Origin: Ylistrum balloti
Lineage: Eukaryota
Direction of reading: 5' to 3'
NCBI RefSeq assembly: GCF_031769215.1
Contig: NW_026782129.1
Coordinates: forward strand, 930,001-994,000
DNA length: 64,000 nucleotides
Shown here in pieces: positions 17,533 through 52,357 of this stretch. The stretch's first letter is position 1. Every line of letters begins with the position of its first letter. The position numbers were made by a program, and so were the translations under genes. The notes under the pieces are model-generated. The model saw nothing but the letters and a program-made list of their open reading frames with translations. It did not search any database and was not told the origin of the DNA.

Positions 17533-17702
17533 TATAAATAAATGTTTGCGAAATTTGCCTCTACACACGCGTAACGTGTACACAAACAGTGGTGTGCAGA
17601 TCACGCGGCATCCCACGAACAGTAAACCTGTGAGGTACAGTTTTGACTGACAGAGGCGATCTTTTCACACAGGACATCATCGCAGAGAGAAGGGTCCCAC
17701 AG
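17533..17702 (+). promoter_or_regulatory. Candidate promoter and non-coding first exon of paralogue A
   Basis: TATAAATA at 17533, a CpG-richer stretch, and a strong donor CAG|GTAAGT at 17703. An acceptor TTCTAG lies 10 nt before the ATG at 20058. The linkage between them is inferred. Confidence 0.35.
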
Positions 17703-20057
17703 GTAAGTAAACTGGACATCATATTTTTTACTATTTCTTACCGTAATGTCTATAATTTCGTTACTCAACGTGAAATTTCGGGTTTAGATATCATCCCTCG
17801 ATTGCATACGCTTTTTCTGAGTGTGCAAAAATAGGTCAAATATTTTCCCAAGATCTGTTGGTTAGAAATACTTGTATGTACGACCAATGCAGGACATAAT
17901 ACACACCAGCGAGGAATGTTGCTCGGAGTGATATATTGGAAATTCCACTGTGTTGTGATGCTCGTCTACAACTAACCATCACTGGTATCAAATTAAGTTC
18001 ATTTCAAACGTTATTTTCTGAATAGCCCTCAAGTAATGTATTTCTAAAACCCCTGACATTTACTGTAGTCAATAACTTCTCAATAAAGGATGTGTATAAA
18101 ATTTTGCCATACAGCGTCCTATGTCTGTTGGGGGACCACACTATCTGACATGTACACAAACGATCGTGTGTGCATGAACGCAGCACTGCTGTGATACATC
18201 TTAATCCATGTAAAACTCGGCCAACATCTCAATGATACACTGTACAGTTGGGGCGTAACCGATTTGGCGTTTTAGGATATATTTCAAGAGGAGATGATAA
18301 ATAATGTTTCCATTAGGACAAATCCTAAGTATACATCGAGTATGAGTACGTTTGGAATCGCCAACAATGGATGTCTGATTAGCCAAAATTTTATTAAAAT
18401 CTCCCCCTAGACTTTTTAATGATATTCTATGACAAAGATACCATGTAATAACTATAGTAAAACAATTACATTTAATTCTCTTTACACATGTCGGATCTAT
18501 GATTGGCTGAAGGGTCACATTTTTCAAATGTGACATACTCTTTAATAACAGCATGAGACAGAAGTGAGAATATTACCAGTTCAAAGTTTACATTAGACTA
18601 ATAAAGCGCTGCTTTGTTTAAACGAGTATTTGCAAAAGTAACTACATTGTATGTGATGTGATAGAAAGAATCTCATACCCTTTCCCGTTTTATATGAAGT
18701 TTTTGTAACTCGTCACGATTATTTTTCATCTTATCGAGTCTCTGACTATAAGACTCGTTTTTTTATCTCACGTGGAGGGACAATTATGTAAGATCTATCG
18801 TATATGTGATAAAGTGTAAATAATTCACACTCTCGTTAGTTAAGTTACTGTCTTTATTCTTATTATAGATTGTTTAGTGAAGTGAGATTACAATACCAAC
18901 ACATGTGTGGTCACATAGTCAACGGTAATTATGACTGTTGGGGACTGGCTACTCGGCTAATAGAGGATGTAAACGTCCAGTGACAGTTATGGTCACCCAT
19001 TCCTTATCGTTGAAACTACGTTACACTGGGTATTGTATCCGATCAGTAGGGGTTGAACAGCAGATGTTTCATCTGCCATGTCAAATAGGTCCCACGTTAC
19101 CTCTGTAAAAGCGTGGGAAATGACAGTTAAAATACCACTTCCCATCACTTCTCGAGACTAGCCGTATTTTCTCAGTTTTCGCTTATACAAATGTTGTCAC
19201 CATGCGTAATATATGTACCACAATTCATGCGAATCAGAAGATCAAGGTCTCGTCGTAAACTGAAGCCACTTATATATATGTGATAAATGCCATAGTAAAT
19301 TTTCCAAATTCTGGAAAAAATCTTAGAATGCAAATGTTTCAAACAGAGTTTATTGAGATTAGAAAATTCAGAAACGTGAAATCTAATTGACTAAATCCCT
19401 ATTTACATTCCATGAATAAAGAACGATGTGCTTTCGATGGGTTTTGTTTAAAACCAATATTTGTCATTTTATATCAAAACACTACGATTCTGATGATATA
19501 CGCAAAAACAATGTTTTTGTTTTGCTTTTGTGATTAACGCCCTTGTCAAATGAGGACAGTCGCGCATGTCAAGAGGGAAACATTAAGTATAATGCATAGC
19601 ACAGAATCATTCATAGTGTCAGAATGCTTACAGCAGAGCTATTTTGATCTCTTCCTGTCTCCCGGAACCTAATGGTCACAAACTTGAAAAGTGATATATA
19701 TTCTTAAACATCCTCTTTGGGTCTATACCAGTCGTCCTGGTGCGGTTTCTTTAATTATGGAACTATGAGACTATTAAGACTAAGGAGTCTTTGCTATCTT
19801 TAAAGAGCCATATGTGTTCATTTTCATTTTGTTTTCGTGGCTTACTTGCTTACTTCTATGGATAACTTGAGTATATCGATAACATCGTTTGCCGAAATAT
19901 CGATATTTAACATGAAGTTTTGTTAATATGCATAAAGAGATATCGAAGCCGTGTAACACATTTTTGTGGGAAAGTTATATTTAGAAATGTTCAAAAGAGA
20001 ATTGTACTTCACCTGTTCAATTAACAAACACTTTAATAAATTTCTAGATTTCCAAAG

Positions 20058-21527
20058 ATGGCGGAACATAATTGTCCACGTATAGCTGTGATCATCGTCA
20101 CAGTCTTTGTGTACATCGTCATGATAGCCTTTAATGCTTTATCTGGAGCTGGCGGACAAGCGCTGGGTAAGTAAATCTAAAATCGCTTTGTATATGAACA
20201 ACAACAAACAAACAAACGTTAGATACTATCATTGAAAACTCAAACAATACAAAAACAAAATGCTAAGAAGATAAACGAACCTGATCTGTACCAACGTGTT
20301 TTGATAACGATCAGTTGAAGGGATATGCTGTGAAATGCTGCTAATTAATATCCAAAACGTACAATTTCAGAAATACGTAGAAATATTATCCTTCATTACT
20401 AGCTATAACAAATAATAAATTGCAAAGCAAAAGATTGATAGATATCCATATAAAATCAAATTATTTCAGAAACAATCGTAAAATCTTGCATATTTTAATT
20501 TCTGGGAGTAAGTGAAGTGCCCTTTCGGTCAAAGTTCATGTTATCAACCAATCAAATAACCGGAAGGTCACACAAATGTCTCAGAGTGGAATATGAGAAT
20601 AAGAAGGTGTTTTATTTGAAATTTATGAAACTGCAACAGAAAGTTCTGCAATAGTCGATTAATGTTTAAGTCCACAAAATACTTCACCTGTATTTGTTTA
20701 TTGTATTTACAGGGATATTCAACAGCACTGTCGGTGACGTCTCCGATATTTTCTATCTCGAGGTGACTCCCGCGGGCTGGACGTTCAGTATCTGGGGCTT
20801 CATATACACATGGCAGGCCCTCTGGCTCATCTACGCCCTCACCACCATCTGTCGTAAAACTAAATCTGGAACCTACATCTACCAACTTCCGGTTCTTCCT
20901 CCAATAATATATGTATTGTACATTTTCAATAACATTTGCCTTGTCTCGTGGTTGTTTGTCTGGGATAGGAAAGAACTTATTTGGGCTTTAGTTACAATTG
21001 CCTTACTTCCTATCACTCTCGCTATAGCCCTCTTCTTTTCGTTCCGAAGGCTGTATCACAACCTCGAAGAACTTACAGAAGATGAGGCTGTCCGAGACAT
21101 CTGGCTCATACGTTTCTTGGTACAAAATGGCATGGCTTTCTTTGGTGCATGGGTAACCATAGCTACACTACTGAACGCTGCCATGGTGATGACCTACAGA
21201 GGTAACCTTACGAATGAAGATGCTTGCACAACTGCCTTGGGTATTTTGTCCTGCATCATTGTCACATGGTTTCTCCTTGACAATACAATACTGGACCGAT
21301 ATGTACGGTACACTTTCAGCCCCTACATTACACTTACTATTGGACTCAGTGGTGCCGTCGCTAAGAATTATGACATTCAACTTCATTATAGAAATTCCAT
21401 CTTTTTGTTGACTCTTCTTGTTGTCGCTGCGGTGATGCTTATTACCAAATTCCATATCATGATATTTCGCCATTTTCGGAAGCCTATTTCTTCTAAAATG
21501 CAATATAACATGAATGCTGAAATTTAA
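20058..21527 (+). CDS. Uncharacterised ~8-TM membrane protein with TspO/MBR-like N-terminal half, paralogue A, 307 aa
   Basis: join(20058..20166,20713..21527), phase-1 intron GTAAGT...TTTACAG. It begins MAEHNCPRIAVIIVTVFVYIVMIAFNALSGAGGQALG|IFNSTVGDVSDIFYLEVTPAGWTFSIWGFIY. Eight hydrophobic segments, and four homologues in this window. Confidence 0.92.
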
Positions 21528-26190: not shown

Positions 26191-27566
26191 TCATATAGTT
26201 GGTTCATATTCTATTTTTGGTGAAATAGGATTTTTAAAATGACGTACAAGCATTACGATAATTTTAGTGAGCAGTAACACGCCAGCTATGATGAGAAGAG
26301 TTAATGAAAACAGAGAATTCCGTTCACGGATATCAAGGTCATAGTTCTTAGAAACCACACCACCGAGTGCCATGGTTAAGGTAATGTAGGGACTGAAGGT
26401 GTACCGAACGTAACGGTCGAAAACCGTGTTTTCTAGGATGACCCACGTGGCTATGATAGCAGACAACATACCCAGAACGGCAGTACAGGCATCTTCATTA
26501 GAAATGCCGCCTTTATATGTCATCACCATAGCAACATTAAGCAAAGTGGCTATGGTAACCCAGGTGGCGTAGAAAGCCATGCCATTCTGTACTAAGAGGC
26601 GGATGAGCCAGATGTCTTTGACAGCGTTCTCCTTATTTAGCTTTCCAAGGTTATGGTACAGCCTCCGAAAAGAGAAGAACAGTGCCACATAGAGCGTGAT
26701 CGGGGTAAGGGCAATGACCACTAGTGACCACACTATTTCCTGTGTATCCCACACGAACAACCAGGCGACGTTTGCAATGTTGTTTAGAATGTATGAAACA
26801 TAGATGACTGGAGGAAGAACCGGAAGTAGGTAGATGTAGGTTCCAGATTTAGTTTTACGACAGATGGTGGTGAGGGCGTAGATAAGCCAAAGAGCCTGCC
26901 ATGCGTAGATGAATCCCCAAATACTGAACGTCCAGCCCGCGGGGGTGATCTGGAGTCTGAACACATTCGAGATTTCACCGGTTGTGTTCTTAAATAGTCC
27001 TGCAAGTAAAACAGCAGCTGTATTTCACAATCAAACCTAACAAGGAATATTCAGTGAATACAACACGAATTGGAGACTCTGTAAAGTCACATTAATACAT
27101 GGGACTAAGTACTACTGAATAGGAGCTACACTCGATGTTTTCTGTAAGATCTATGTGGACAAGTGGCTGGTTGTGCTTCGGAAGTCGCTGTGAGTAGAGG
27201 GCAGAGGCAAAAGTATTTACACTAAATAAGATCTTGACCTCTAACAATGTGTTTTGAAACTCACCGGACATATCTACCCCCCACCAGTATCCCATCCCGA
27301 CCATCACCTCGAGAATTTTACTTGCATAGTAATAATATAAACTTGCAGAAGTTTGAAAGATGTTGTTGTAATCTATCTGGTAACCAAATTGTTCACAGAT
27401 CAATTTTCGGCTGAAGTAATATTTATTTAGAGAACACCAGTCAGTTTGTCCACTTACCAATTTTTTGTCCGACAGATCCAGCCAGAGAGTTGAACACCAC
27501 CATGACGATGTATATAGCAACTGTCATGATGATCAGTAGAATACGCAAGCCGTTGTGGTCCGCCAT
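26191..27566 (-). CDS. ~8-TM TspO/MBR-like membrane protein, paralogue B, 305 aa
   Basis: complement(join(26191..26999,27458..27566)), phase-1 intron GTAAGT...TTGCAG. It begins MADHNGLRILLIIMTVAIYIVMVVFNSLAGSVGQKIG|LFKNTTGEISNVFRLQITPAGWTFSIWGFIY. Its closest relative is paralogue A, with which it is tail-to-tail. Confidence 0.92.
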
Positions 27567-34016: not shown

Positions 34017-35295
34017 TCAGACTATCGAGTTTGTTGATTTGTCCGACGTTGTTGGCGTGTACACCATTGGGGACAAAGGCACGCGGTTGTGACGGAGAAG
34101 AATGATGATAAATTTCAAGAATAAGAAAATACTAGAAACACATAAAATCGTTACTGAGAGAATGGAGTTGCGGTACCGAAGTTCAAGGTCAAAGTTTTCT
34201 GCAATCGACCCTGTAAGGGCTATTACGAGGACGATGTAAGGGCTGAACATGTATCTGGTGTAGTTGTCAAGTAGAATGTTCTCCGACAGGAACCACGAAA
34301 TCACGAAAAATAACAGCATGCCGAGAACTGTGGTACAAGCGATGTCATTGGCTACTCCTCCACTGTAGTGCATCACCATGGCAACATTAAGGTGGGTCGC
34401 AACAGTGACCCAAGTGGCATAAAATGCTACTCCGTTCTGAAGGAAAAAACGTATGAACCATGCTTCCTTACCCGCGCCATCTTTAATCAAGACACTGAGG
34501 TTATTGTGTACTGCCCGACAGGAGATACCCAATATTACGTATAAGGTCAATGTCACTAAAATAATGTCCGCCAGGGCAATTTCTATATATTTCCGGTCAA
34601 ACAATATCATCCAGGCAACGTTAAGTCCAAGATTCAGAATGTAAATGATATAGATTGCAGGAGGCATGACCGGAAGTTGATAGATGTAAATACCGCTGTC
34701 AGACTTCCGGCATATAGTAGAAAGTCCATATATAAGCCAAATGATTTGCCATATATAGATGAAAAACCATATGCTGAATGTCCAGCTGGCGGGGGTTATC
34801 TCCAGGTAGAAGTAATCAGACACGTCACCAGTACTACTCTCGTAGATACCTGTAATTCACAGAGAAAATTAAGGATTGAGTGCATGTTCTTCATGTTTTA
34901 GTTTATTACGATCTGGTTTATATCTAAAACATTTAATGAGGAGACAAAATAAAAGAAAACTTTGGCACATAATAAAACACTCAACTACATTTACAGCGTT
35001 TCTTTTATTTAACAAACTTCGATTAAAATCATCACGTGACTCTGTTCGATTGATCACCTGACTAAGTCAAATGATCACGTGCACGTGGCTAAAAACAATG
35101 TTTCAATTCTCTGAATGACTTTCCGAACATAGGTTTATGATAGGATGATAATGACTCTGTGGTCATATATTACTTACCAAGAGCTTTACCTTCACCTGAT
35201 CCTAGGTAATTGAAGAAAAGCGTCACACCGAACACGAGGACAGAAATCAGGATTAATGAGATTCTGTAACCGCTGTGTCCGGAATCGGCAGCCAT
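34017..35295 (-). CDS. ~8-TM TspO/MBR-like membrane protein, paralogue C, 316 aa
   Basis: complement(join(34017..34849,35178..35295)), phase-1 intron. It begins MAADSGHSGYRISLILISVLVFGVTLFFNYLGSGEGKALG|IYESSTGDVSDYFYLEITPASWTFSIW. Confidence 0.92.
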
Positions 35296-35406
35296 CTTCG
35301 ATATCTGTTCAAAGTAGAAAAGTCAGCATATAAATTCACGTGTTATAGGAAGCACTTGAATTTAACGTCCTTTTGTGTCGGAACAACGTCGCTGAATGTT
35401 ATACAT

Positions 35407-36086
35407 GTACAGATAGACAAAGAAAAACTTCCTCTCTAGAATCTGTCTGACCGTGTCTCTCTTTATACCACTAGGTATAGATAGACAAAGAGAAAATTCC
35501 TCTCTAGAATCTGTCTGACCGTGTCTCCCTTTATACCACTAGGTATAGATAGACAAAGAAAAACTTCCTCTCTAGAATCTGTCTGACCGTGTCTCCCTTT
35601 ATACCACTAGGTATAGATAGACAAAGAAAAACTTCCTCTCTAGAATCTGTCTGACCTTGTCTCCCTTGATACCACTAGGTATAGATAGACAAAGAAAAAC
35701 TTCCTCTCTAGAATCTGTCTGACCGTGTCTCCCTTGATACCACTAGGTATAGATAGACAAAGAAAAACTTCCTCTCTAGAATCTGTTTGACCGTGTCTCC
35801 CTTTATACCACTAGGTATAGATAGACAAAGGAAAACTTCCTCTCTAGAATCTGTCTGACCTTGTCTCCCTTGATACCACTAGGTATAGATAGACAAAGAA
35901 AAACTTCCTCTCTAGAATCTGTCTGACCGTGTCTCCCTTGATACCACTAGGTATAGATAGACAAAGAAAAACTTCCTCTCTAGAATCTGTCTGACCGTGT
36001 CTCCCTTGATACCACTAGGTATAGATAGACAAAGAAAAACTTCCTCTCTAGAATCTGTTTGACCGTGTCTCCCTTTACCACTCGGT
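35407..36086. repeat. 68-bp minisatellite, 10 copies
   Basis: The unit GTATAGATAGACAAAGAAAAACTTCCTCTCTAGAATCTGTCTGACCGTGTCTCCCTTTATACCACTAG starts at 35407, 35475, 35543 ... 36019. Confidence 0.98.
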
Positions 36087-36772
36087 ATCTATGATAAAAT
36101 TTATTTCTATACCTCTGTACAAAAGTTAAAACATGCCCTTTACTTAGTTAATGTTAATCGAATGAACAACCCCCTCTGGTAATGTTGTATGGAGGACTGA
36201 GAATATTTTAGAATACAATATACGGTGTCTTAAGTGATGTACAAAATTATATACGACATTCCTTTTTAGGGTGATACCACGCACATTATACGATAAAATA
36301 ATCAAAATATCTTGTTATCATTTGGTGTAGGATAGCATGAGCTCGACATTATATTTAGAATATAAATAATAATAAAAAAAAAACAGACATCATGTGAATT
36401 TTGCAATGATACACGCATTAAAATGTGAAAATATCAGTTTAGTTCTGTTTCTACGCTACATTTACTTTTAAAAGAAATGTTTATATCAAGGATACCTGTC
36501 GTAAGGTATATCCGCCAATAAGATGAAATTGTATAATGATTTGTGTTCTTCAAACTTTTTTTATCCTTTTTGGCAACAATATACTTAAATACTTTCAGTA
36601 TTTGTCCCTTGTAAATTTAAACAACTATTCACTTTAATCTTACCTTAGTATAACTGCGCTGTTGGTTAGTATTGGCCTGACTGCACTCCAATCCAACCGT
36701 TTCCCTTCAAGTACAAGTTCAATATTTGCTAAAATGCCATATACCCACGTTGTATATATATTCACAAGCTAA

Positions 36773-36790
36773 CACGTTACTCGAAACGTG
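36773..36790. promoter_or_regulatory. Tandem E'-box element CACGTT-N6-AACGTG upstream of paralogue C
   Basis: ACACGTT ACTCGA AACGTGAC. The same motif with the same spacing precedes paralogues D and E. It lies 129 bp from a candidate 5'UTR donor (exon end 36644, GTAAGA). Confidence 0.7.
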
Positions 36791-39010
36791 ACATTTCTTT
36801 AAAAATCAGTCGTAGTCACTGAACTGTGACAAACATCTTGTATAACAACTGTTAGCCGTTTCATAACCAGGACATACCTCCCATAATCAAAAAGTGTGGG
36901 AAATGTTACCACTGTCCACTGCACACCTAATTGGGTAGTTATGACGTAAAATGGACGTCATTTAATAAGATAGTAATAATGACCGTAGGTCAATGAATAG
37001 AACTGATTTAAATAACAATACAGTTAGGAGTTGTAAACTTATTTACCTTTGACACCGACTTACCCGTACCGTGAGACGACACCCTCTGTCCAGTTATTCA
37101 TATACTGACCGTTCCACCAGTTTGTTTGACGGGCAATGTTACGTGTACGAATGTTTGTTATCTTTAAACACAAGAATTTGTTATCTTCATTACGTTAATG
37201 TTAAAACCTGTATCTGCGTAGATTGTGTATGTAAGATGTGTGCAGCGATATATATGACATATGTTGGGGCGGTCTGGCAAACACTTGTTCCATGTTGTGT
37301 AATCAGTCAATGTATCGGAAGAAAAATCATAGAAAATCGATATGTTGTCTTTACGGGAGAAAAAGCGTAATAATGTAAGTATGACTTTAAACAGGGTGTT
37401 TAGTAGTCTGGATAACCTGCCTAGTTACGGTCAGATTTTGATTACAATATTCTTCATCTAAATGAACAGATTTTATTCCACTTTTTAAGAATTTGCAGTC
37501 CTTTCCTGTCCATTCAGCACATTATAGAGAAACCTTTTTTGACATCTAATATCTACATGCCGTACATACAATAGTTATTATAATGTTAAAATAACAATGT
37601 TTGATTGATATTGATAGTCCGTATTTGATACTGGTCAGATGTTTATTAAAAATGTACTACAATTGATTTACTATAAATATGGCGTATCGATTGGTTCCTC
37701 CGTGGTTGATCAAGAGTGACCAGTCAGTGTTTGATGATAAAATTTTTTGTGAAAGACTGGTACTATGGAAAAGGGGCCGTTTCATTATATCTAGTTGTTC
37801 ACTGAATCACGTATTGATTCTGTTCATTTGTAAATATGATGATTCCAAAAGTCAGTATCAGTTTTGTAACCCCAGGGTTGTCAAGGGTTGAAAAATTCTG
37901 TCTTGCACGTCTAGTTGTAATTTCTCGAGTAAGGACAGCTTACTCATTCTAAATGCTATTTGAGGGGCCATCTTTGGACATTTCCAATGACCTCAAAGTG
38001 TTTTACAAGACGTGGCTGCAGTATGATGATTCTTATATGTCCTCTGTATAAAGCCTTAAATGCATTTACATGTACAGTCTATATTCTACAATAATCCTCA
38101 TCATCTCCACTATTGAATATGCTTTGTAGATGACAAGTTGTGACCATAGTAAGTCAGTGTAGATGTCAATTGCTCTTCAGAGTTAACTAATTATCCTTCT
38201 TATCAATCCTCGTTTCAGATTTTTTTAGCTTAATAACTTCAAATAAACTGTATTCAATATAATTTGTTACACATTTACTATTTATTCTCTACACTTTTCT
38301 ATAGTGTATAAAGTCTGAAATTCCCCATGTTTCCCCACATACAATGGTTAGCGGTCAACATCTCGACGTTCACTGATCACAGCTCATTACTGTTCGGTCA
38401 CCGACAAATTCATCCATGTGCCAGAGGAACTGTTGTCAGAATATACAGAAGTGAAACACAACGCATTAGCACGGGTTGTTTCCCCTAGAAAAGTCCAAAA
38501 CGGAAACCTGTGAGATCATGATATAAAATTTTTTTCTATGATGATTCGGTTTTTAGATATCAACGATAGAAGGTATAACAAAACATATGTAGAGTGGATT
38601 TTCAGTAACATGTACTTCTATGACCAAGCTGTTGGCTTCGTCCTCGTGCAACAATTTAGTCCTCTGGTTAAACAAAACACATGTTGACCTCAAACCAAGT
38701 CAACAAATGTGTGGTATTTACCACAATATCTAAAATGCTATTTATTAGGAATATGTGATATGAAGTAACGTGCTGTGATTTTCTGAAGATTCCCATTGTG
38801 AATTGTGCTGTTGAGAATTGAGAATACCGCCAATTCGGATTCCGTATCAGTCTCATAAACTGTGGTTTTCACGAATGTTTACAAAATTGCATGTGATCAG
38901 CAGAATCTAGCATTAGTTCCATCTCATATGATATTTCAAATTTTTTCATGTTACCCCAACAGAGACGTGGTAAAAGATACTATTCCACACCGACTCCAGG
39001 AATAATATAC

Positions 39011-40562
39011 TAAAACATCAGAAACACGGATGCCAGGAACCATATACTGTAGTAAAACATCATATACACGGACGACAGGAACCATATACTGTAGTAAAAC
39101 ATCGGATACACAGTCGGCAGGAACCATATACTGTAGTAAAACATCATATATACAGACGACAGGAACTATATACTGTAGTAAAACTTTAGATACACGGACG
39201 GCAGGAACCATATACTGTGGTAAAACATTAGATACACGGACGACAGGAATCATATACTGTAGTAAAACATCAGATATACGGACGGCAGGAACCACATACT
39301 AAAGTAAAACATCAGATACACGGACGGCAGGAACCATATACTGTAGTAAAACATCAGATATACGGACGGCAGGAATCATATACTGAAGTAAAACATCAGA
39401 TACACGGACGATAGGAACAATATACTGTAGTAAAACATCATATATACAGACGACAGGAACTATATACTGTAGGAAAACATCAGATATACGGACGACAGGA
39501 ACCATACACTGTAGTAAAACATCAGATATACGGACGGCAGGAATCATATACTGAAGTAAAACATCAGATACACAGACGACAGGAACCATATACTGTAGTA
39601 AAACATCATATACGCGGACGACAGGAACCATACACTGTAGTAAAACATCAGATATACGGACGACAGGAACCATATACTATAGTAAAACATCAGATACACG
39701 GACGGCAGGAACCATATACTGTAGTAAAACATCAGATACACTGACGATAGGAACCATATACTGTAGTAAAACATCAGATATACGGACTGCAGGAACCATA
39801 TACTATAGTAAAACATCAGATACACGGACGGCAGGAACCATATACTGTAGTAAAACATCAGATACACTGACGACAGGAACCATACACTGTAGTAAAACAT
39901 CAGATACACGGACAGCAGGAACCACATACTGTAGTAAAACATCAGATATACGGACGACAGGAATCACATACTTTAGTAAAACGTCAGATACACGGACGAC
40001 AGGAACCATATACTGTAGTAAAACATCAGATACGCGGACGACAGGAACCATACACTGTAGGAAAACATCAGATATACGGACTGCAGGAACCATATACTAT
40101 AGTAAAACATCAGATACACGGACGGCAGGAACCATATACTGTAGTAAAACATCAGATACACGGACGGCAGGAACCATATACTGTAGTAAAACATCAGATA
40201 CACGGACGACAGGAATCATATACTTTAGTAAAACGTCAGATACACGGACGACAGGAACCATATACTGTAGTAAAACATCAGATACGCGGACGACAGGAAC
40301 CATACACTGTAGGAAAACATCAGATATACGGACTGCAGGAACCATATACTATAGTAAAACATCAGATACACGGACGGCAGGAACCATATACTGTAGTAAA
40401 ACATCAGATACACGGACGGCAGGAACCATATACTGTAGTAAAACATCAGATACACGGACGACAGGAATCATATACTTTAGTAAAACGTCAGATACACGGA
40501 CGACAGGAACCATATACTGTAGCAAAACATCAGATACACGGACGGCAGAAATGACACAGTAA
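39011..40562. repeat. 42-bp minisatellite, ~37 copies, with a 252-bp (6-mer) higher-order repeat
   Basis: Unit ACATCAGATACACGGACGACAGGAACCATATACTGTAGTAAA. The variant TACTTTAGTAAAACGTC recurs every 252 bp (~39968, 40220, 40472). ORFs 39973..40203 and 40225..40455 are identical. Confidence 0.98.
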
Positions 40563-42501
40563 AACATTCAACTGTAACGAAGCAGTCGAAACAGGAAAGG
40601 CAGCAACACCATATTTAAACAACAGACATATAAGACAACAAAATTAACCGGAAGTTTTGAGACAATCGAACAACTGGTTATCTAGCTCGCCGGACAGATG
40701 TGATACAATTCCTAATCAAAAGTTTCAATGAAGACAAACGTCTTGGTAGGTATTATTAAGGAGTCAGTAAAAAACAAAAAGTCTCAAATAACTTTCGTCA
40801 TTTTTAATAGTCTTCTGTAATTTACACTCAATTATGCATGTGTAAAGTCAGTGAGATACTTATTCCATGTAGTATCTCATTATTATTATGATACGATGTG
40901 TGTATGTAGTGAAGTTGACACAGGAACCACAGTCATGACTTATTCCTATATACAATTAAATATTCCTCTCATTGACGGAATCTTCATAACTCCACGCCAA
41001 GAGTCTCCAAAGTGACGTCATGACATAATGCCATATCATGACACTAAAGCGATCATACTGGATCCATCCATATCCAAATTATTGTAAGCGTATACAAGAG
41101 ACAAACATCGATTATGCAATTCGAGGGCAAATATTAGAAAATGGCATAGGCAGACACAACTAAACTGCATCTGTTCTGATATGCAAAGTGTTATATATTT
41201 GATATTAGAGGATATCTAATGGTTTATGTGAAATATCACATACATTCAAACATAAAAACAAGCGGTGTTTATAAAAGTTGGGGAAATATAACTGCGCTCT
41301 TTTGCGTCAATAGCTTGACATTACGCTTGACAACAAGATGTCGTTATTTTAAATAGGCTGTTTTACCTTTTTTCTACCAATTTATGATGTTGTTTGGTAA
41401 AAACTGCTTACAAAACTGTTTTTATATACCAAATTAGCGAAAATCAGAAACGGGAATCATTTGATGGAACTAACCTTGTTCAGCCAACGCTTCATTTGTG
41501 TCGGCGAATTTCAACGAAGTGATTAGAAAGCGATATTCTCGTTGATCAAAAGTACGAAAGTTATCAATCTCTTTCAGAGATGTCGTTCATTAATAGTAAA
41601 AATACACTTCTGTTAACGACTACCAACAGCTGACTTCGCGGTCAGGGTCAAAGTTTGAAATCGGGCAAAAATATGGTGGCATCCTGGATAACACCAACGA
41701 AGGAAACATTTGTTTTGTATGCCATCGATCAGCGTTAACGCCATTATCTTTCTGCGATAAATTTTACTACGTTTATAGCCATATTGATCAATGTAGTCAA
41801 TTTTTATTTAAACATATTTCATATTTTATGGAACAATTTCAAGTTTTTTCTATTAAGCTCTTTCACCACTTAACAAAGTACATAATGACAAGACAAAACA
41901 TGTTGAAAAAAAATTACACGGAGAGAGAGAGTGTGTGTGATTTGACGTATTTTTACATTGTCTTCCTTAGAGAAGTTATTTTTACCATATAGAAGTAACT
42001 TAAGGTCTACAACGATAAAATCCTTTGGTTCTCGGTAAAGAATTACTCTCCGATCCGCATAACTATTGAGAGTAACGTAATCATTTTTCAGGCTAACAAA
42101 TGTTTCTTTTCAAAATATCGACATAAATAACAAAATAGAGAAAACCAATTAAATAATTAGTTATTAGACACAAATACGTGTTTAAAGAATCTTAAAAAGG
42201 TGTGAGTTATTTACTGAGGTGATATGTAGGGTACCGCAATGCACTCTGGGAGAGATTCGAAAGTCATATCTTACTCACTGTAGTGATGATGTCAGTTATT
42301 ATCAAATCAAAAATATATATTACTGGCAAAAAATAATAAGCGAATCTGATGTCCCGAATTTTCATATCGAGCATCGGCATTTAACAATATATATATTTCC
42401 AATAATATGTGGCAATGAAAAGTTCATATTGAGGTATATCGCAAAAATTCATTCAGCAATGTCTCGTTTGAAACTGTTTCTGGAAAGCCTTCTGAAGACG
42501 T

Positions 42502-43829
42502 TTAAGCTTCCAACTTGAATGATTTTTCTGAACTCGTGGGCGTATGGCCACTTGCAGATAAAGGCGCGCGGTTGTGACGAACAAGGATTATAATCAGTTT
42601 CAAAATCAAGAACAACCCACTGATGCCTAATAGAATAAAAGATGTAATCGAGTTCCGGTACCGAAGGTCAAGGTCAAAATTTTTTGCCAACGAACCTGAT
42701 AGGGCTATGACGAGGACGATGTAAGGGCTGAACAGGTATCTTGTGTAGTTGTCAAGAAGGGTGATCTCTGTCAGGAACCACAAGATTACGAAAAATATCA
42801 GCATGCCGAGTGCAGTGGTACAGGCGATGTCATTGGCTACTCCTCCACTGTAGTGCATCACCATAGCAAGATTGAGATGGGTCGCAACAGTGACCCAAGT
42901 GGCATAAAATGCTATTCCGTTTTGAAGGAAAAAACGTATGAACCATGCTTCCTTACCCGCGCCATCCTTAATCAAGACACTGAGATTATTGTGTACTGCC
43001 CGGCAGGAAATGATAAGTATAACGAACAATGTCAATGCCATGATCGCGGCAGTCGGAAGAGAAATGTTTATGTACTTTCGGTCAAATAGCATCATCCAGG
43101 CAACGTTGAAACAAAGATTGAGAATGTAAGTAATATAGATTGTAGATGGCATGACCGGAAGTTGATAAATGTACACACCACTGTTTGACTTTCGACAGAT
43201 AGTAGAAAGTCCGTAAACAAGCCAGATAATTTGCCAAGTGTAGATAAAACCCCATATTGAGAATGTCCAACCAGCAGGAGTTATCTCCAGGTAGAAATAA
43301 TCCGATATGTTGGCAGTAGTGCTCTCGTAGAGACCTATATATGAACAAGAAAACGAAATATAAAAAAAAACTTCAAGTCATTATATATCTATATTCAACT
43401 CTTAAATAATCTCATTAAACATGCGATTTTTACCTAGAACATTTAAACGCGTGTTTAGCTGAGAATAGTACATCCGCAAGTGTTACGTGCAAATTACATA
43501 TCGATTTCGTTGAGCAATGCTCTTCAGATTCATGTTTTTCGTAACGATTTAACATTCTTATATAGGTGTGATACACTTTTAATAAGAATAGAAACTATCT
43601 GGTAGAAGCGAAACTAATACTTAATACTTAAACTGAAATTTGTTACCAACGGAAATCGTCCTATCACCTGGTACAATGACCTGATCGTCTACGGAATGAA
43701 CAACTTACCGATAGATATACCAATATCACCGACGGCCAGATAGTTGATGACAAAGGTCACAATAAAAAAGAAACACGTCAGCAGCATCAGCAGGATGCGG
43801 TAACTGCTGTGTTGGGGTTTGGAACTCAT
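42502..43829 (-). CDS. ~8-TM TspO/MBR-like membrane protein, paralogue D, 317 aa
   Basis: complement(join(42502..43334,43709..43829)), phase-1 intron GTAAGT...ATATAG. It begins MSSKPQHSSYRILLMLLTCFFFIVTFVINYLAVGDIGISIG|LYESTTANISDYFYLEITPAGWTFSIWGFIY. Confidence 0.92.
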
Positions 43830-45105
43830 CTTCGATATCTGAAAAAGAGTATTTTCTTGTGTTTTTTTATCATATGTAGACAAAGTGATCTGACATTCTA
43901 CCTGATAGAAAGTCAAGATACTAACCAGAATTTCCAATTCTTAAGTAACAACACCAACAACTATGCCGGTATTCTGGCAATGACTTACGGAATTCATAAT
44001 AATGATAATAATAACAGACAAGACATAGGTAAAAAAGGAGAAAATACATATTTCATTGCTGTCCTGCAAAGTCTAGATACAATCTCCCAGAATCCAGGAG
44101 TTTCCAAGTATTACCATAAATACAAGTCTGTAGTACTTAACGAACCTAGGTGTTTGTGTTTCTGTCTTTCTAGTTTTATTATATAAAAAATGTAGAAGTA
44201 AAATAGCTTACAATATGACTCAAGACAAAAATACAATAAATTACAAGTGCTTTTTATAACCTGTGTCTTATGCAATTAAATTACTTTGATATACAATATT
44301 TCAAATTATTATCGATGACTCAGTGACATACAGATCTTGGTAAATAATATTTTCTTTTTAATGTTGGTTGTCCGACTCTAGTAGGATAAAACCTGAAAAC
44401 AATTCATACCTTTTAAATAAACAAAACAAGCAATGTAAGTTTGATACGGGAAATCGATTAAGAGGATATGTATTATTATTGTGTCTAAGAAAAAAATTGT
44501 TCTTATCACGAGTTCTGCATGTACCTACATGCATGTGCAGTCAAAATTAATACGAGTGCAGCTTTGTTTCGGTAAAGCATACATACATGTATGCCATTTG
44601 CATCGAATTCTTAACACACTCATAATTATGAAGATTTATTTTGCCAATATTTTCCTGCTGAAGAAGATCTTCTTTCCATTGTTGATATGACCTATGTCAT
44701 GTATACTGTTTAGAGCGGACGTGATGAGATGTACAATCTTTGTATTAGGACTGGATGGATATAGATCACAGAAATAGTGTTGACTGTAAGCTGTATACGG
44801 TACATTTAGTCCAAAGAAGAATGAGAGGAAGCGGACACAAAAACAATTTTCGTATAAAACCTTTATCTCAATGGAACAATCAAATAGTTGGACGTAGTAT
44901 TGATATTCTGATATATAACAATGTTAGGTGTAGGCTAAGTATGGTTTCTCTATTGTGCGTGTTCATACGGAAGTTAAAGGGTACATATATATCGGTGGCA
45001 AATCAATTATCATGGTAGATTCTCATTTTAATACTGTGGGAAGAGATTGGAAATGTTTTTGTCCACTGTTTGCTGCAGTTTTATCCTTTTAACATTAGCC
45101 TTCTG

Positions 45106-45327
45106 AAAGCATTGGCCTGCTGAAAACACTGGCCTGCTGAAAACACTGGCCTACTGAAAACATTGGCCTGCTGAACACATAGGCCTCCTGAAAACATTGG
45201 CCTACTGAAAACACTGGCCTGCTGAACACATTGGCCTAATGAAAACATTGGCCTACTGAAAACACTGGCCTGCTGAACACATTGGCCTAATGAAAACATT
45301 GGCCTACTGAAAACATAGGCCTGCTGA
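45106..45327. repeat. ~17-bp tandem repeat, ~13 copies, with 51-bp higher-order periodicity
   Basis: Units of the form AAAACA(C/T)TGGCCT(G/A)CTG. The 17-aa repeat in ORF 45081..45458 reflects the 51-bp period. Confidence 0.93.
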
Positions 45328-45619
45328 AGGTTAACATGATAAAAAATTATCATTGATATTTTATCACACTGGTTGGAATATTTTGTACTGTGACCTATCA
45401 TTACCGATGAGCAGTAGTTTTTAACAGAACGAGAATTTGAAGAAATCGCCATGCACATTGTTTTGTCTTAAAAATCTCTCCCATCCTCACATATTAAACA
45501 TGTTGTTAATGTTAATAGGGATATATTATACTTACCTAAAACCTTCTTCTAATAACCGTGTGTCTGCACCCGTCCCCTACGGTACATTTGTGTTTAGTAC
45601 CCCAATACTCGCTAGCATA

Positions 45620-45637
45620 CACGTTTTCTGAAACGTG
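45620..45637. promoter_or_regulatory. Tandem E'-box element upstream of paralogue D
   Basis: ACACGTT TTCTGA AACGTGAC. It lies 84 bp from a candidate 5'UTR donor (exon end 45536, GTAAGT). Confidence 0.7.
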
Positions 45638-47171
45638 ACATCCTTTTTTAAATGATTTTTAACCACTGATCCTTGACAAAATATCTGGGCCGTCTACACG
45701 TGTATACAGCCTTTGCGTAACCATACGTAAGCGAAATAACGTGCCGTTGTGTAAGCCTGATGTTGTTTATTGGCAAACTACTGCAACTTTATACATAACT
45801 TACAATGTTAAAAGGGATGAGCATCTCCTTGTTACCATGAAGGTCTAACATACTGAGATCACCGCGTCAGGATAGAGAAACACGAACGATCCGATCTGGA
45901 GACGTTAGACACACCTGTAACTTGTATACACTAAGTATACGAACGCCTAGTCTCCATGTTAACAGCTAGGTAATGCTGGTTATTGTACAACGAACATTGT
46001 CTGGAAAACAGAAAAAAATGTGTATAGTTTTATTGAAGACAGAGAGTTTTTTTCTAGAATACCCGACATAAAAGCTACTTCAAATATGTACTAAAATATG
46101 AGATACACAGACGGTATCCATCATATACTAACACATATATTTCTCTGGTTCGTTTTGCCACCATGATAGTAAATCCAATCCATGGTGCAGATGATTCGAT
46201 ATCCAAAGATTTGATCCAAATATGACGACTTTGATGCAAGATGTCGGCAACTGACGGACAACTTCGTATCGAAAGGTTTCAAGAGAAGCAGGTTGATAAA
46301 AATGATGGAGATTTGTTACGGTCGTCTTAATAGCCTCACTCAGAATTAAGAGGTGCAGTTTATATTGTTGTGGATATGAAGTTGGGCGTGGTTGGTGCCC
46401 GTTAGTATACCTGTGTTTTTGCTACATCTCTGTTGACATTACTTACACGTACTTGGATTGACTAAGATTTACACAGCGGGTGTCGTCGACGAAGCAGAAA
46501 CCACAAACCCTTCCTTGATACTGTCCTAAAGTCAATGAATTTGAGTCTAAATTAGCATTCTGTTGACATGTCGGGGTTTTTTTGTCGCAAGTTACAAACA
46601 AGTAAATCTATGAATTAATGATACCATGTACTAGTTATCAGACACTCAAATATCGCAATCAAATTAAAATGATTAAATGCTCATCTATTAACACGAGGTT
46701 ATGCCTGCACATGTAAGACAAGTACTTACCATTACTAAACGTTATCATCCGTACTTACCAGTACTTGTCATCGAAACAGTTCTTATTAGCTCTTAGTAGA
46801 TATGATTTGGGAAAAAAATATCAGGAAAAGCACGGAGAAATCATCTTTATCTATCTTTAATATTCTGCAATCAATTCAACGTGTACAATTACAATATATT
46901 TGTTGTAATTTGGCTAAACAAATCCAACTAGATTTAATACGTCAATCAAATATATCTATTCAATGTTTCTAGAATAATATTTTGTACATATTCAAAATTA
47001 TAATTAAGTTATAAACCGTCAATTGCTTTCATACATAAAATATGACGAACATGAATATTAATGTTATTAAGCAGCAAAAGAAAGGATGATTAGCAAAACT
47101 GTAACTAGATTAACTGTGCATTCTACCTCGATGCTCTTCCGAATCGATAATCTGGCGGATAAACGAATGTT

Positions 47172-47835
47172 GATGCAGAGAGAAAGAGACAGGTTTAGCC
47201 GGATGGGTCACTATAAAGGAAAGCGTCCCACAAAAGCATTACTAAACGTTATCATCCGTTACTACAACAATTACGATGCAGACAGAAAGAGACAAGTTAA
47301 GCCGGATGGGTCACTATAAAGGAAAGCGTCCCACAAAAGCTACAACAATTACGATGCAGAGAGAAAGAGACATGTTTAGCCGGATGGGTCACTATAAAGG
47401 AAAACGTCCCACAAAAGCATTACTAATCGTTATCATCCGTTACTACGGCAATTACGATGCAGAGAGAAAGAGACAGGTTTAACCGGCTGGGTCACTATAA
47501 AGGAAAGCGTCCAACAAAAGCATTACTAATCGTTATCATCCGTTACTACGGCAATTACGATGCAGAGAGAAAGAGACATGTTTAGCCGGATGGGTCACTA
47601 TAAAGGAAAACGTCCCACAAAAGCATTACTAATCGTTATCATCCGTTACTACGGCAATTACGATGCAGAGAGAAAGAGACAGGTTTAACCGGATGGGTCA
47701 CTATAAAGGAAAGCGTCCCACAAAAGCATTACTAATCGTTATCATCCGTTACTACGGCAATTACGATGCAGAGAGAAAGAGACAGGTTTAACCGGCTGGG
47801 TCACTATAGAGGAAAGCGTCCGTTACTACGACAAT
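47172..47835. repeat. 103-bp minisatellite, ~7 copies
   Basis: Units start at 47172, 47275, 47353 (the second unit carries a 25-bp deletion), 47456, 47559, 47662 and 47765. Confidence 0.97.
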
Positions 47836-48191
47836 ACTAAAAGTCGGTGCTTAACGTCCTACATAGTTATGTAAAGGCATCTCTTAAAAAGAATCAGCAT
47901 TGAAGTTGTTTTTGATATTATAAGTAGTTATAATCTCTGTGTATATATATCGTCCATCATTATGTTCTATAAACTACCCGTACAGAGAAAGTTATGGCTA
48001 GATCTCACTTAGAGCAAGATATAAACAAATTAGCCAGAAACTGTATTATGCCGAATAGTATAGTATCCGCAAACATCACCAATTCACATATATGATATTA
48101 TGAACTGCCTTCACTTGAATATTGGCCTCAATACATGGTGTTAGTGTGGTTTCCCAATAGTTTTAGGTTGAAAAGGGTTTTAAGAAGCCGT

Positions 48192-49579
48192 TTATGCATT
48201 CGACTTCATGACCTTTTCGGTTGAAGTGGGTTTGTAGACAGTTGGAGACAAAGGTTTACGGTTGTGACGAATGAGAATAATGATGAGTTTCAAGACAACG
48301 AAAAATCCAGATATACCTAAAAGAATTACTGCGAGGATCGAGTTCCGATACCGAAGGTCAAGGTCGAAGTTTTTCGTAATCGACCCTGTAAGGGCTATTA
48401 CGAGGACAATGTAGGGACTGAATATGTATCTGGTGTAGTTGTCCAGTAGGATGTTCTCCGTCATGAACCACAAAATCACGAAAAATGTCAACATGCTGAG
48501 TGCAGTGGTAGACGCGATGTCGTTAGCTACTCCTCCGCTGTAACACATAACTATGGCAAGGTTAAGATGAGTCGCAACAGTGACCCAAGTGGCATAAAAT
48601 GCTATTCCGTTCTGAAGGAAAAAGCGTATGAACCATGCTTCCTTACCCGCGCCATCTTTAATCAAGACACTGAGGTTATTGCGTACTGCCCGACAGGAAA
48701 TGATAAGTATAACGTACAATGTCAATGCCATGAGCGCGGCATCTGGAAGAGAAATGTTTACGTACTTCCGGTCAAATAGTATTATCCAGGCAATGTTAAA
48801 TCCAAGATTGAGAATGTAAGTGATATAGATTGTAGGAGGCATGACCGGAAGTTGATAGATGTAAATCCCGCTTTCTGTTTTCCGGCAGATGGTAGAAAGT
48901 CCGTATACGAGCCATAGTATTTGCCATGCGTAGATGAAAGCCCATATCGTGAATGTCCAACCAGCAGGAGTTATCTCCAGGTAGAAGTAATCAGACACGT
49001 TACCAGTATTGCTCTCGTAGATACCTGTAACATATCAGGGAACAAGGATCGTGTATGCCATTTACTATAATTTTCAAATCATATGCCGAACTGTAAAGTA
49101 ATCAAAAGTAAGGAAACGTATGTTTGAGAAATCTTACCTTGTTTGGAAAAGCAATAACTGTCTTAGAGTAGTGGGGGGTTGGGGGGGGGGGTTCTCGGTC
49201 AAAATTAGGTAAAGGTGGTTCTCCTCTTTGTATGCTACACGTCATGGAAAGGTCCATATACGCATGTATCAGGTTCTCGAGTCCCTGTGTACGAGATCTT
49301 GTATCAGGTTCTCGAGACCCTGTGTCCGAGATCTTGTATCAGGTTCTCGAGTCCCTGTGTACGAGGTATTCTTGTCGGATGTTTTGGTTTTGCAACAATT
49401 GTTGTCAATATCACAGATAACTACTTTTCTACTTTTATATTCCTCATTAATGTGATTATATCTGACTTACCAAGAGATTGCCCGGCCTCAGCTGATGCCA
49501 GGTAATTAAAGAAAAGTGTCACACCTAACACAAGGCATGTCAACAGGATTAGTGAGACACGGTAGCAGCTGTGTGCCAT
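48192..49579 (-). CDS. ~8-TM TspO/MBR-like membrane protein, paralogue E, 313 aa
   Basis: complement(join(48192..49024,49471..49579)), phase-1 intron GTAAGT...TTACAG. It begins MAHSCYRVSLILLTCLVLGVTLFFNYLASAEAGQSLG|IYESNTGNVSDYFYLEITPAGWTFTIW. Confidence 0.92.
49266..49366. repeat. 35-bp tandem repeat, 3 copies, in the intron of paralogue E
   Basis: GTATCAGGTTCTCGAGTCCCTGTGTACGAGATCTT at 49266, 49301 and 49336. Confidence 0.95.
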
Positions 49580-50337
49580 TTTGGATATCTAAAAATATGA
49601 GAAACACAGAATGAGACACAGTGTATGTATGTATATTTCTATAACAGCATCTACCAACTTTTTATAATTTCGGATTAATTAAAAAAAAAATCGTGACTGT
49701 ATTCAAAACCGAAGTCTAGATATTAAACCTTTAAAGCTTTATTTTCAAACATTGTGCTGTATCATAGAAATAAGTTATAAAAACAAAATCACAAAAAAAA
49801 CTTTAACCAAAACCAATAATTTGAAAATATTTTCCCCGTTTACATACATCATAATGATTCGAGTATACGCCTTAAATTATTCAAAATAAATGACAAGATC
49901 AAGAAGATAAATCGTAAGTTTTATATGCTATTTTTTAAATAGATTCAGATAAATAGAATTAATTCGAAATCAATATTTTGTAAGTTCAGATAAAAGATTT
50001 TGGCTGGTAAAATGCTCTGCATTTTCGTTTGTTAATTTTACATTATACAAGTACCTGCCAATAATGAGTCTACTGGACGAAGTTAATGACTAGTCGTGTA
50101 CATCCTATACATATCAAAATTGTTACAGGTAGGATTTATTTAATCTACAAGATTATATTATTTAACAACGCCAGATTTCTAAATAAAAAAATGATTTGAT
50201 TTAGCGCCTGTTCAAGAGTAAAGATTAGAATTTCAAACATTCATTCAGTTCAGTTTCACCTTATGTCCTACTCAAATCGGTCATACCCCTATCCCACCTC
50301 CAGGTACATGTTCTAAGCCTATTAACCTACTTACGGA

Positions 50338-50355
50338 CACGTTTCTTTAAACGTG
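50338..50355. promoter_or_regulatory. Tandem E'-box element upstream of paralogue E
   Basis: ACACGTT TCTTTA AACGTGAC. It lies 78 bp from a weaker candidate donor (exon end 50260). Confidence 0.7.
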
Positions 50356-50770
50356 ACCTGTACTTCTGCATGTTTCGTGGCTACTCTACTGTGACGAGAC
50401 AAGCAATTATCCTTGTGTGTCGTAACCACACTCATACGTGTGTTAGGGTGGGCTTTCTGTCTGAAATCTGAGGCTATAACCGGTGGGAAAGATATAAGCT
50501 TGATGAAATTTGAAATATCACCACAACTTCTACCATATACTACAACTGGTTACCTTACATGTATAACAATCAGAAAAAAAAACGAGCGATATGGACAATT
50601 GAAAGTGACATGTATGAGGATTGTCCAGCTCAGCACCATAACTATCACAATGTTGTTTTGTAAAGGAACCAGTAAGAACGCCTACCTGTATTATACGTCC
50701 CTGGCCTACCCAAGGCAACATAGTGTTGGGAGAGGTAAATATTATTTTGCCAGGGAATATGATGGACTCA

Positions 50771-50800: not shown

Positions 50801-52357
50801 TTCGGCAAAGTATCCATCCATGCGGTTCCTGGGTACGTCGAGACATGTTGCTATTGATGGTGAAACATGAATTGGTAGACTGAGCGTCATGTGAACAGTA
50901 TTCCAAAAACTTTTATGCACAATTTTAAATGACATATCTAAAATCGGGGTAGAGAAAACGTAAGCGATATGCAGCCGTTAATCATGAAGAATGTTTACCT
51001 TGTTACTCTACATACAAATATGTAACCCATCATCTACGAGAAAAGTTCCATGTAACCGTTCTTTTCACCGACACCATTTACTCTAATTAGGTGACCACCG
51101 TCTTCCCAAGCCCGGATACATTAAAATAATTTTTAAATATCAAAAACATATTTCTGGAAAGTTTTCAGAATGATTTTCATCCCGAATGAAAATTACGACC
51201 AATCTGTTTCTCATTTGAAAACTTTAACTGTTCACATGAAATATGTACATCAGGCATATTTCTGGACACGGAGAATTTACCATATATTCACTATATATGT
51301 ATATATATATAATACGATCTACAATGTACGTACAATTTAGGGCTTGTTCAGCACACGACTGTGTTGGAATGAACAGTTACTTTGTGTAAGAATGTTTGTC
51401 AATACAGTTTGTACAATAGGTAGAAACGTACGCTTAACGACCCTGACCAGACGTACGTCACCGAGTTAATCAACTGGAAGTACTTATAACAGAGTACCAG
51501 TTTACAATCGATTTCTCTTCGACATTATTTACCTTTGTGTAAGTATCCTAATGTGATAAGATCGATAAACAACGATTGAATCAAAATGACCAAACTGGCA
51601 ACAACTATTACAATTAAAAACATAAGATATGTAGATATTATATACATGTATTTCTTGGAATAACAGAAATTGTACACTGAAACATCGGGTATAGAGCTGG
51701 CAGTTATTACGATCGCATAAGCGTTGTTACATATTGGAGTCAAAAGCAATTCATGAATGACATACATACCATCGGGTGCAGCGCCAACAATACACAAACA
51801 CATAAAAATTGAGGTTATCCGATTTTTTACCTGCTTCCTTCTCTGTATTGTAGAACAGGTGAAAACTCGACACGGTCACGTTGATGGTCAGGTCTACCAC
51901 TAAGCTGTACAAACACATGTAAATCTCGAGTGGTCGACCAAATCGATTCTCTTAAACAATGTTAAATGCCCACGGGTGTGTCTCGTGTGACCACAATTAT
52001 GCCATTAGGGTAGGTAACGTAACACGTGACCACGTTTGTGCTTGTTGGGGAGGTTACGTAACACGTGACCATGTTTATGTTTTTTGTGGAGGTTTCATAA
52101 CGTTTAGCATACCTTACTTTGTTTTCATAATGACTGGTTTATTTCAAAATGCAAATTAACCAGTATTTCCATTCATTTGTTTTCGTGAGAAAGACTCGGT
52201 ATAAGTTATATGAATATATAAAAGTTACCCCATTAAAAATATCGACACTTGTACGCCTCTAGTATAATTTTTCCTTACAAATTCAGTTTTACTTGTTTGT
52301 GATCATCTAGAGTTCAACCACATTCGATTGAACACCTAATTATCTTCCTTAGGTAAT

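Follow-up and report, generated by a model that had tools for sequence, protein, structure and literature searches.

A cluster of TspO-like genes with a double E'-box

The 64-kb stretch of the Ylistrum balloti genome analysed here (called here the window; assembly GCF_031769215.1, contig NW_026782129.1, positions 930,001 to 994,000) contains five paralogous genes, A to E, encoding multi-pass membrane proteins of 305-317 amino acids with a weak match to Pfam TspO/MBR. Gene A is located on the plus strand and genes B, C, D and E on the minus strand, so that all three copies of the element studied here, a pair of inverted non-canonical E-boxes of sequence CACGTT-N6-AACGTG (called here the double E'-box), lie upstream of genes C, D and E. 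These three TspO-like genes each consist of three exons. To obtain exact gene models, the spliced coding sequences were required to reproduce the RefSeq proteins (P0006 for C, P0003 for D and P0001 for E). The annotated gene ranges comprise the coding sequence only, without untranslated regions. The open reading frame at 48192-48998 gave a translation matching LOC132550134 (Ylistrum balloti, GCA_031769215.1) at 100%. The three copies of the element are as follows.

36772..36792, minus strand: double E'-box of gene C, in gene sense GTCACGTT-TCGAGT-AACGTGT
45619..45639, minus strand: double E'-box of gene D, in gene sense GTCACGTT-TCAGAA-AACGTGT
50337..50357, minus strand: double E'-box of gene E, in gene sense GTCACGTT-TAAAGA-AACGTGT

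Exact matches to CACGTT-N6-AACGTG were found three times in the window (36773-36790, 45620-45637 and 50338-50355), with none expected, and 100 dinucleotide-preserving shuffles of the window yielded no match. In agreement with the preliminary description of this DNA, which had reported a tandem with invariant hexamers and invariant 6-bp spacing, the extended form ACACGTT-N6-AACGTGAC is exact at 36772, 45619 and 50337; read in the sense of genes C, D and E, it is GTCACGTT-N6-AACGTGT and includes two CpGs. The differing spacers and weakly aligning flanks described at the same time were also found: the spacers are unlike, and the flanks of the three copies align over 60-75 bp only, at ~68-70% identity.

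The possibility that the motif is part of a common repeat, which the preliminary description had named as fatal to its proposal, was not borne out. In a second individual (run X1, which consists of genomic DNA, as its contigs pass straight through introns), the gene E motif carries no variant and is covered at the same depth as its flanks (~10x, single-copy), compared to 65x for a real repeat nearby. Within the ~250 kb of bivalve DNA examined, the element is confined to these promoters. A dispersed repeat or transposon end was thus rejected as its source, on the basis of the even X1 depth, the unique flanks and the restriction of the motif to these promoters in the window and in nine loci.

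Conservation of the element in scallops

Orthologous loci were fetched from Pecten, Mizuhopecten and Argopecten, and homologues also from Tegillarca and Mactra. Every C/D/E-type orthologue fetched from the three scallop genera is preceded by the exact element, with the exception of one decayed Argopecten paralogue: Pecten maximus has two exact copies, Mizuhopecten yessoensis one and Argopecten irradians three, which together with those of Ylistrum makes nine copies in four genera. All nine read GTCACGTT-N6-AACGTGT in gene sense, in one fixed orientation. When spacings of 0 to 14 were scanned, matches were obtained at 6 only, and a spacer of 6 bp is found in 11/11 elements (the nine exact copies, the Argopecten variant and the copy of the ark clam Tegillarca granosa described below). 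When all nine copies are aligned, no column of GTCACGTT or AACGTG varies, the mean column identity of the aligned region is 44% and the spacer loosely follows T-n-r-A-G-r. Between genera, blastn aligned non-coding sequence only at the motif block and at the acceptor region of the ATG exon.

Divergence at four-fold sites is ~0.30 among the Ylistrum genes C, D and E and 0.4-0.65 between genera, and 8 of the 50 sites shared by eight copies are invariant. Because silent sites in the same genes are near saturation, the probability that all 14 of the 14 motif bases were retained neutrally is as low as ~7e-12 for the eight copies; for the Ylistrum trio alone it is ~2e-4. These comparisons support strong purifying selection on an element that is specific to the C/D/E subfamily. 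The conservation in related species, which the preliminary description had named as a check, is exact across four scallop genera, and a copy with one mismatch is found in the ark clam. We hold it very probable that the double E'-box is a functional cis-element, a real and deeply conserved promoter element.

The decayed Argopecten irradians copy (L004:8914-8934) reads ATCACGTT-TAAAGG-AATGTGT, with a CpG to TpG change in the second box, and no strong donor was found within 230 bp of it; from its sequence, this paralogue may be losing the promoter. In Pecten maximus, the main exon of LOC117315607 (L002:17840-18645) shows two frame changes in tblastn and its RefSeq protein is flagged LOW QUALITY; its upstream element (L002:15153) is exact, and the locus is either misassembled or a pseudogene of very recent origin. 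A semi-conserved TTGTCACAGnTCAGTGG block was also observed in scallops 35-55 bp upstream of the double box.

Position of the element relative to the transcription start

Of the 10 C/D/E-type genes examined, 8 have a conserved acceptor, ttttcAG/ATATCCAAA-ATG, 9 nt ahead of the start codon. This acceptor therefore requires a further, non-coding exon upstream. In 6/9 copies, strong donors (AAGGTAAGA or TAGGTAAGT, score ~11) are located between +102 and +147, counted from the motif start. In the window, the candidate donors lie 129 bp (C), 84 bp (D) and 78 bp (E) from the motif end, close to the distances of 78-129 bp given previously.

The Tegillarca granosa homologue carries the element as GTCACGTT-ttattc-AgCGTGT (L008:4584-4604), with one mismatch and with the same flanks and spacing as in scallops, followed by a donor CAG/GTAAGA at +133 from the motif. 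Logan RNA assemblies from three Tegillarca runs, all belonging to one study, describe a transcript of four exons in which a non-coding exon 1 is spliced to the ATG exon. Their 5' ends map to L008:4605, 4605 and 4607, only 2-4 nt past the motif, which places the element at ~-19 to -2 relative to the transcript start; the element therefore abuts the start of non-coding exon 1. A second ark-clam transcript (L013) is unspliced and was uninformative. Taken together, the conserved acceptor, the scallop donors and the Tegillarca transcripts support a position of the element directly before a non-coding first exon, for which the preliminary description had noted candidate donors. The arcid and pectinid lineages split in the Palaeozoic, and the architecture of the element is therefore old. 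Tegillarca further carries a perfect palindromic canonical E-box (GTCACGTGATC; aGTCACGTGATc) at L008:4568-4579, ~17 bp upstream of the double box; no canonical E-box was found at this position in scallops.

The resulting structures of genes C, D and E are listed below.

36644..36770, minus strand: gene C, putative non-coding exon 1; donor AAG/GTAAGA, score 10.9, at +147; start placed from the Tegillarca transcripts
35178..35304, minus strand: gene C exon 2; ATG at 35295, conserved acceptor 9 nt before the ATG; coding sequence as in P0006
34017..34849, minus strand: gene C exon 3, main coding exon; LOC132550133, 316 amino acids, TspO-like
45536..45617, minus strand: gene D, putative non-coding exon 1; donor TAG/GTAAGT, score 11.0, at +102; start placed as for gene C
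43709..43838, minus strand: gene D exon 2; ATG at 43829; spliced coding sequence as in P0003
42502..43334, minus strand: gene D exon 3; LOC132550063, 317 amino acids, intact
50260..50335, minus strand: gene E, putative non-coding exon 1; weaker donor AAG/GTGAAA, score 7.2, at +96; another candidate at +58; end uncertain
49471..49588, minus strand: gene E exon 2; ATG at 49579; spliced coding sequence as in P0001
48192..49024, minus strand: gene E exon 3; LOC132550134, 313 amino acids

The distance from the motif to the ATG varies from 776 bp (E) to 1495 bp (C) and 1808 bp (D), owing to tandem satellites in the cluster. A 68-bp unit is present in 10 copies in intron 1 of gene C (35271-36182), a 17-bp unit in 13 copies in intron 1 of gene D (45040-45362), a 42-bp unit in ~37 copies between the C promoter and gene D (38876-40700) and a 103-bp unit in 6 copies downstream of gene E (47159-47854). 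About 1 kb upstream of the E promoter, the interval 51255-51454 has a depth of ~65x in X1 compared to ~10x in its flanks and breaks contigs, pointing to a dispersed repeat. A scan for TATA boxes detected a perfect TATATATA at +30/31 in copies Yb_C and Ai_B1 and TTTAAA-like runs between -20 and -9 in Yb_C, Yb_D and My_1; with candidates on both sides of the motif in a genome of ~35% GC, the TATA box was dropped as an anchor for the transcription start site (TSS).

The A/B subfamily and the protein family

The two other paralogues of the cluster do not carry the element.

20739..21527, plus strand: gene A main exon (A/B-type paralogue), without the element
26191..26973, minus strand: gene B main exon (A/B-type paralogue), without the element

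As the preliminary description had stated, genes A and B lack the full motif: no comparable element was found within 7 kb of either, and no tandem box of any kind was detected at gene A, gene B, the A-type gene of Pecten or the Mactra homologue. A partial motif, AACGTGT, ~140 bp before the exon-1 donor of gene A was discarded, as the A-type orthologue of Pecten does not share it. A likely A-type promoter with its non-coding exon 1, conserved between Ylistrum and Pecten (17535-17740 and L007:4498-4697, respectively) and ending in a donor CAG/GTAAGT, was observed; its conserved blocks are TGCGAAATTTGCC and GATCACrCGGC and not the double E'-box. In the protein tree, the C/D/E-type genes form a Pectinidae clade apart from the A/B type. 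From these comparisons, the two subfamilies appear to have a common gene structure and different promoter elements.

The family as a whole (proteins P0001-P0088) comprises unnamed eukaryotic multi-pass membrane proteins whose match is a weak one to TspO/MBR only, with relatives in molluscs, annelids, brachiopods, echinoderms, hemichordates, fishes and a bird. Among the proteins derived from Logan run assemblies, no C/D/E-type sequence was found and A/B-like clusters reached up to 108 members, a hint that expression of C, D and E is weak or conditional. A literature search on six LOC identifiers of these genes returned no match, and a search combining TSPO, bivalve and hypoxia returned mammalian TSPO papers only. 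Elsewhere in the window, two open reading frames at 6690-8543 on the plus strand correspond to a Kv-type potassium channel gene with BTB_2 tetramerisation and Ion_trans domains.

Fit to the tandem E-box of the circadian clock

The preliminary description had relied on CACGTT being the E'-box bound by CLOCK:BMAL1 and on paired E-boxes 6-7 bp apart being a circadian architecture, a background that agrees with published work (Paquet 2008, Rey 2011, Nakahata 2008). An EE-element has been defined as a first box (E1) with at most one mismatch to CACGTG and a second box (E2) with at most two, separated by 6 or 7 bp and located no more than 1 kb upstream of the TSS (Nakahata 2008, PMC2254435). The first box of our element, CACGTT in all 11 elements, conforms to this definition, as does the second, which is AACGTG in the nine copies and whose variants AATGTG and AGCGTG have two mismatches each. 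The spacer of 6 bp conforms in 11/11 elements, and so does the position, which is given directly by the transcripts in Tegillarca and, in scallops, by inference from an exon-1 donor between +102 and +147. In the fly element, CACGTG is followed 9-10 bp further on by GTG; the second box, E2, converges on AACGTG, and the spacing is equivalent to N6/7 (Paquet 2008, PMC2242825). The outer flanks of our element, GT...T, match the NPAS2/BMAL1 consensus GGGTCACGTGT quoted in that study. Two BMAL1/CLOCK dimers bind cooperatively at a spacing of 6-7 bp, and this cooperativity is lost at 9-10 bp (Rey 2011, PMC3043000). Scallops express clock and cycle.

Several observations weigh against assigning the element to the clock. 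The EE definition is loose, being satisfied 33 times by chance in the 64-kb window; the fit to it is therefore weak when taken alone, and it is the conservation that constitutes the strong evidence. In mouse Dbp, an E2-E2 construct is weaker than the wild type and a canonical E1 is needed for robust activation (Rey 2011, PMC3043000), whereas no scallop copy contains CACGTG. Mouse Per2 and the per enhancer of the mussel Bathymodiolus (see below) show that a canonical E1 is not universally required. The spacing is rigidly 6 bp here, whereas the clock E1-E2 tolerates 6 or 7 bp, and the near-perfect palindrome could be read by a single symmetric factor. As for the position, RNA-seq assemblies can stop short of the true 5' end, so that the motif is possibly partly transcribed; the scallop TSS is placed by inference, and TATA-like runs flank the motif on either side. 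In every one of these scenarios, no more than a few tens of bp separate the element from the TSS.

None of the 18 boxes of the nine copies is a canonical CACGTG, though this sequence is one substitution away, which argues for a factor or complex that needs an asymmetric box and suggests selection for the AAC-GTG form. The retention of AAC-GTG would be better explained by a heterodimer with distinct half-site preferences, or by the exclusion of generic factors, than by binding of the USF, Myc or TFE type.

Proposed mechanism

[quoted passage not shown] CLOCK:BMAL1 (CYC) would be the best-fitting factor and the element would be the scallop version of the clock EE or E1-E2 tandem E-box; C, D and E would then be direct clock outputs with rhythmic expression. 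The parts of this proposal do not stand equally firm. Binding of tandem dimers of the bHLH type is probable. The identification of the factor as CLOCK:BMAL1 specifically is put forward tentatively from the fit of spacing, boxes and flanks, and the same reserve applies to the best overall explanation of the data, namely a TSS-abutting promoter element bound by a pair of bHLH-PAS dimers, CLOCK:BMAL1, with clock outputs under its control. That genes C, D and E may be co-regulated by a bHLH-PAS dimer pair, as the preliminary description had put it, is a good hypothesis.

Alternative readings of the element

Pax paired-domain sites and Su(H) paired sites were rejected by eye, the key bases being different. 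The best-placed alternative, though a rather unlikely one, is that another bHLH-PAS:ARNT pair (HIF-alpha, Sim or Trachealess-like) occupies the element, making C, D and E hypoxia-responsive or tissue-specific. ACGTG is present in both boxes and fits the HIF core RCGTG, as does the AGCGTG of Tegillarca; the Argopecten AATGTG, however, loses RCGTG and still fits an E2 box. The persistent AAC half-site would suit an asymmetric heterodimer, and bacterial TspO proteins, which are linked to oxygen and porphyrin biology, lend the idea some appeal. HIF heterodimers do form dimer-of-heterodimer complexes on paired sites, as on the hypoxia response element/HIF ancillary sequence (HRE/HAS), which resembles our element in its inverted repeat of ACGTG-type cores and which binds a dimer of bHLH-PAS heterodimers. 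However, HRE/HAS has the form RCGTG-N8-CAC, with an optimum of specifically 8 bp and with the ARNT half-sites facing inward (bioRxiv 10.1101/2025.05.29.656908), whereas our element has a spacing of 6 and its CAC/GTG half-sites point outward. The hypoxic variant raised in the preliminary description is thus not supported in the documented paired form, and of the two versions it is that of the clock which agrees better with published geometry.

An element read by bHLH-leucine-zipper factors (USF, MITF/TFE, Myc/Max or Mondo-Mlx) would be a general or metabolic one with no link to timing. The outer half-site and its flank, GTCAC, correspond to the flank preferred by factors of the USF/TFE type, and Tegillarca has its extra perfect GTCACGTGATC just upstream. 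The principle of paired imperfect E-boxes occupied by two heterodimers is that of the carbohydrate response element (ChoRE), which often combines good outer with degenerate inner half-sites, and in which the two heterodimers bind cooperatively and specificity comes from the imperfection of the boxes (Ma 2006, PMC1761440). However, the ChoRE needs exactly 5 bp between its boxes, 6 bp strongly impairing the response and 7-15 bp being inactive (Ma 2006, PMC1761440), whereas all 11 elements have 6 bp; moreover, factors preferring CACGTG leave the 0/18 canonical boxes unexplained. We regard this alternative as unlikely.

A comparably low probability is given to the palindrome being read whole by a symmetric dimer, whether a basic leucine zipper (bZIP) or other ACGT-core factor, or acting as a family-specific element that positions the core promoter. 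The perfect inverted repeat, its rigid spacing and the semi-conserved spacer T-n-r-A-G-r would be compatible with such a unit, as would the location at ~-19 to -2 of the Tegillarca transcript start, in the zone where the pre-initiation complex assembles. Conversely, no known factor class was matched to this half-site spacing, and the element is not fully symmetric, being flanked by GT at one end and by T at the other and having a fixed orientation to the gene.

It is very improbable that the element works as a hairpin formed by the mRNA at its 5' end, or as a DNA cruciform, instead of as a duplex bound by protein. Every copy can fold into a stem of 6-7 bp (-6 to -8 kcal/mol), G.U pairs would be retained on the sense strand in both AATGTG and AGCGTG, and the outermost 5' bases of a transcript can be absent from RNA-seq contigs. 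Nevertheless, the three independent Tegillarca assemblies begin past the motif, the stem is short and weak, and its sequence is invariant with 0 compensatory changes, which points to base-specific recognition. Finally, some common upstream sequence is expected of the tandem duplicates C, D and E, but a functionless leftover of duplication, or chance, is effectively refuted by the ~30% divergence of neutral sites in Ylistrum and their near saturation between genera (P ~2e-4 and ~7e-12, respectively), and by the one-mismatch copy at the same place in the ark clam.

Significance

Almost no clock-controlled cis-elements have been defined in molluscs, and the sole functional bivalve example that we found is the distal per enhancer of a deep-sea mussel. 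The double E'-box is short, sharply bounded, present at several paralogues and in several species and located beside the transcription start, and is thus a ready test object for marine chronobiology. It bears on whether bivalve CLOCK:BMAL1 uses the tandem-box grammar of flies and mammals for daily or tidal timing, and opens a first way into the regulation of an unnamed family of TspO-like proteins. It also offers a clean case of regulatory divergence after duplication, because C, D and E keep the element and A and B are without it. If the clock reading is true, a subfamily of TspO-like membrane proteins would be timed directly by the clock. At its widest, this reading would make the double E'-box an ancient clock or circatidal output element of pteriomorph bivalves, with two CLOCK:BMAL heterodimers back to back at the TSS on boxes that exclude generic E-box factors, a TspO-like subfamily (of the porphyrin- or sterol-binding type) that is clock-timed, and A and B on a different promoter; in this full form the proposal is speculative and, on balance, doubtful.

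Comparison with known tandem E-boxes

From its sequence, the double E'-box appears to be a new case of the known tandem E-box kind, unusual in being a perfect palindrome and in having two non-canonical boxes. As in the E1-E2 element of insects and vertebrates (PMC2242825; PMC3043000), two hexamers are separated by N6/7, the second conforms to the E2 consensus AACGTG with its conserved distal GTG, the flanks match the NPAS2/BMAL1 consensus GTCACGTGT, and conservation is centred on the element and drops fast outside it. By contrast, E1 is there normally CACGTG, whereas our element has two E2-like boxes and in no copy a spacing of 7.

The closest mammalian counterpart in layout is the E2 enhancer of mouse Per2 (PMC2254435; Doi 2019, PMC6561950). 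This element, CACGTTTTCCACTATGTG, begins with CACGTTTT and is located at -23, or at -20/-15 in another account. Like ours, it has CACGTT(TT) first and a second E-box-like hexamer 6 bp further on, is situated ~20 bp upstream of the TSS and does not need a canonical CACGTG. Its second box is however TATGTG, in a direct repeat of degenerate boxes, whereas ours is AACGTG in a perfect inverted repeat; furthermore, binding and rhythmicity are proven for Per2 and predicted for the scallop element.

Among bivalves, block 118 of the Bathymodiolus azoricus per enhancer contains a CACGTT box that is essential for activation by BazClock and BazBmal, a neighbouring CACGTG being dispensable (preprint, bioRxiv 10.1101/2025.10.08.681125). 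It is thus a bivalve element in which CACGTT, and not CACGTG, is required for the response to the animal's own CLOCK and BMAL. Unlike the scallop element, block 118 is distal, 6-8 kb upstream of a core clock gene, and spreads three boxes over 86 nt, whereas the double E'-box is an N6 palindrome that abuts the TSS of a putative output gene.

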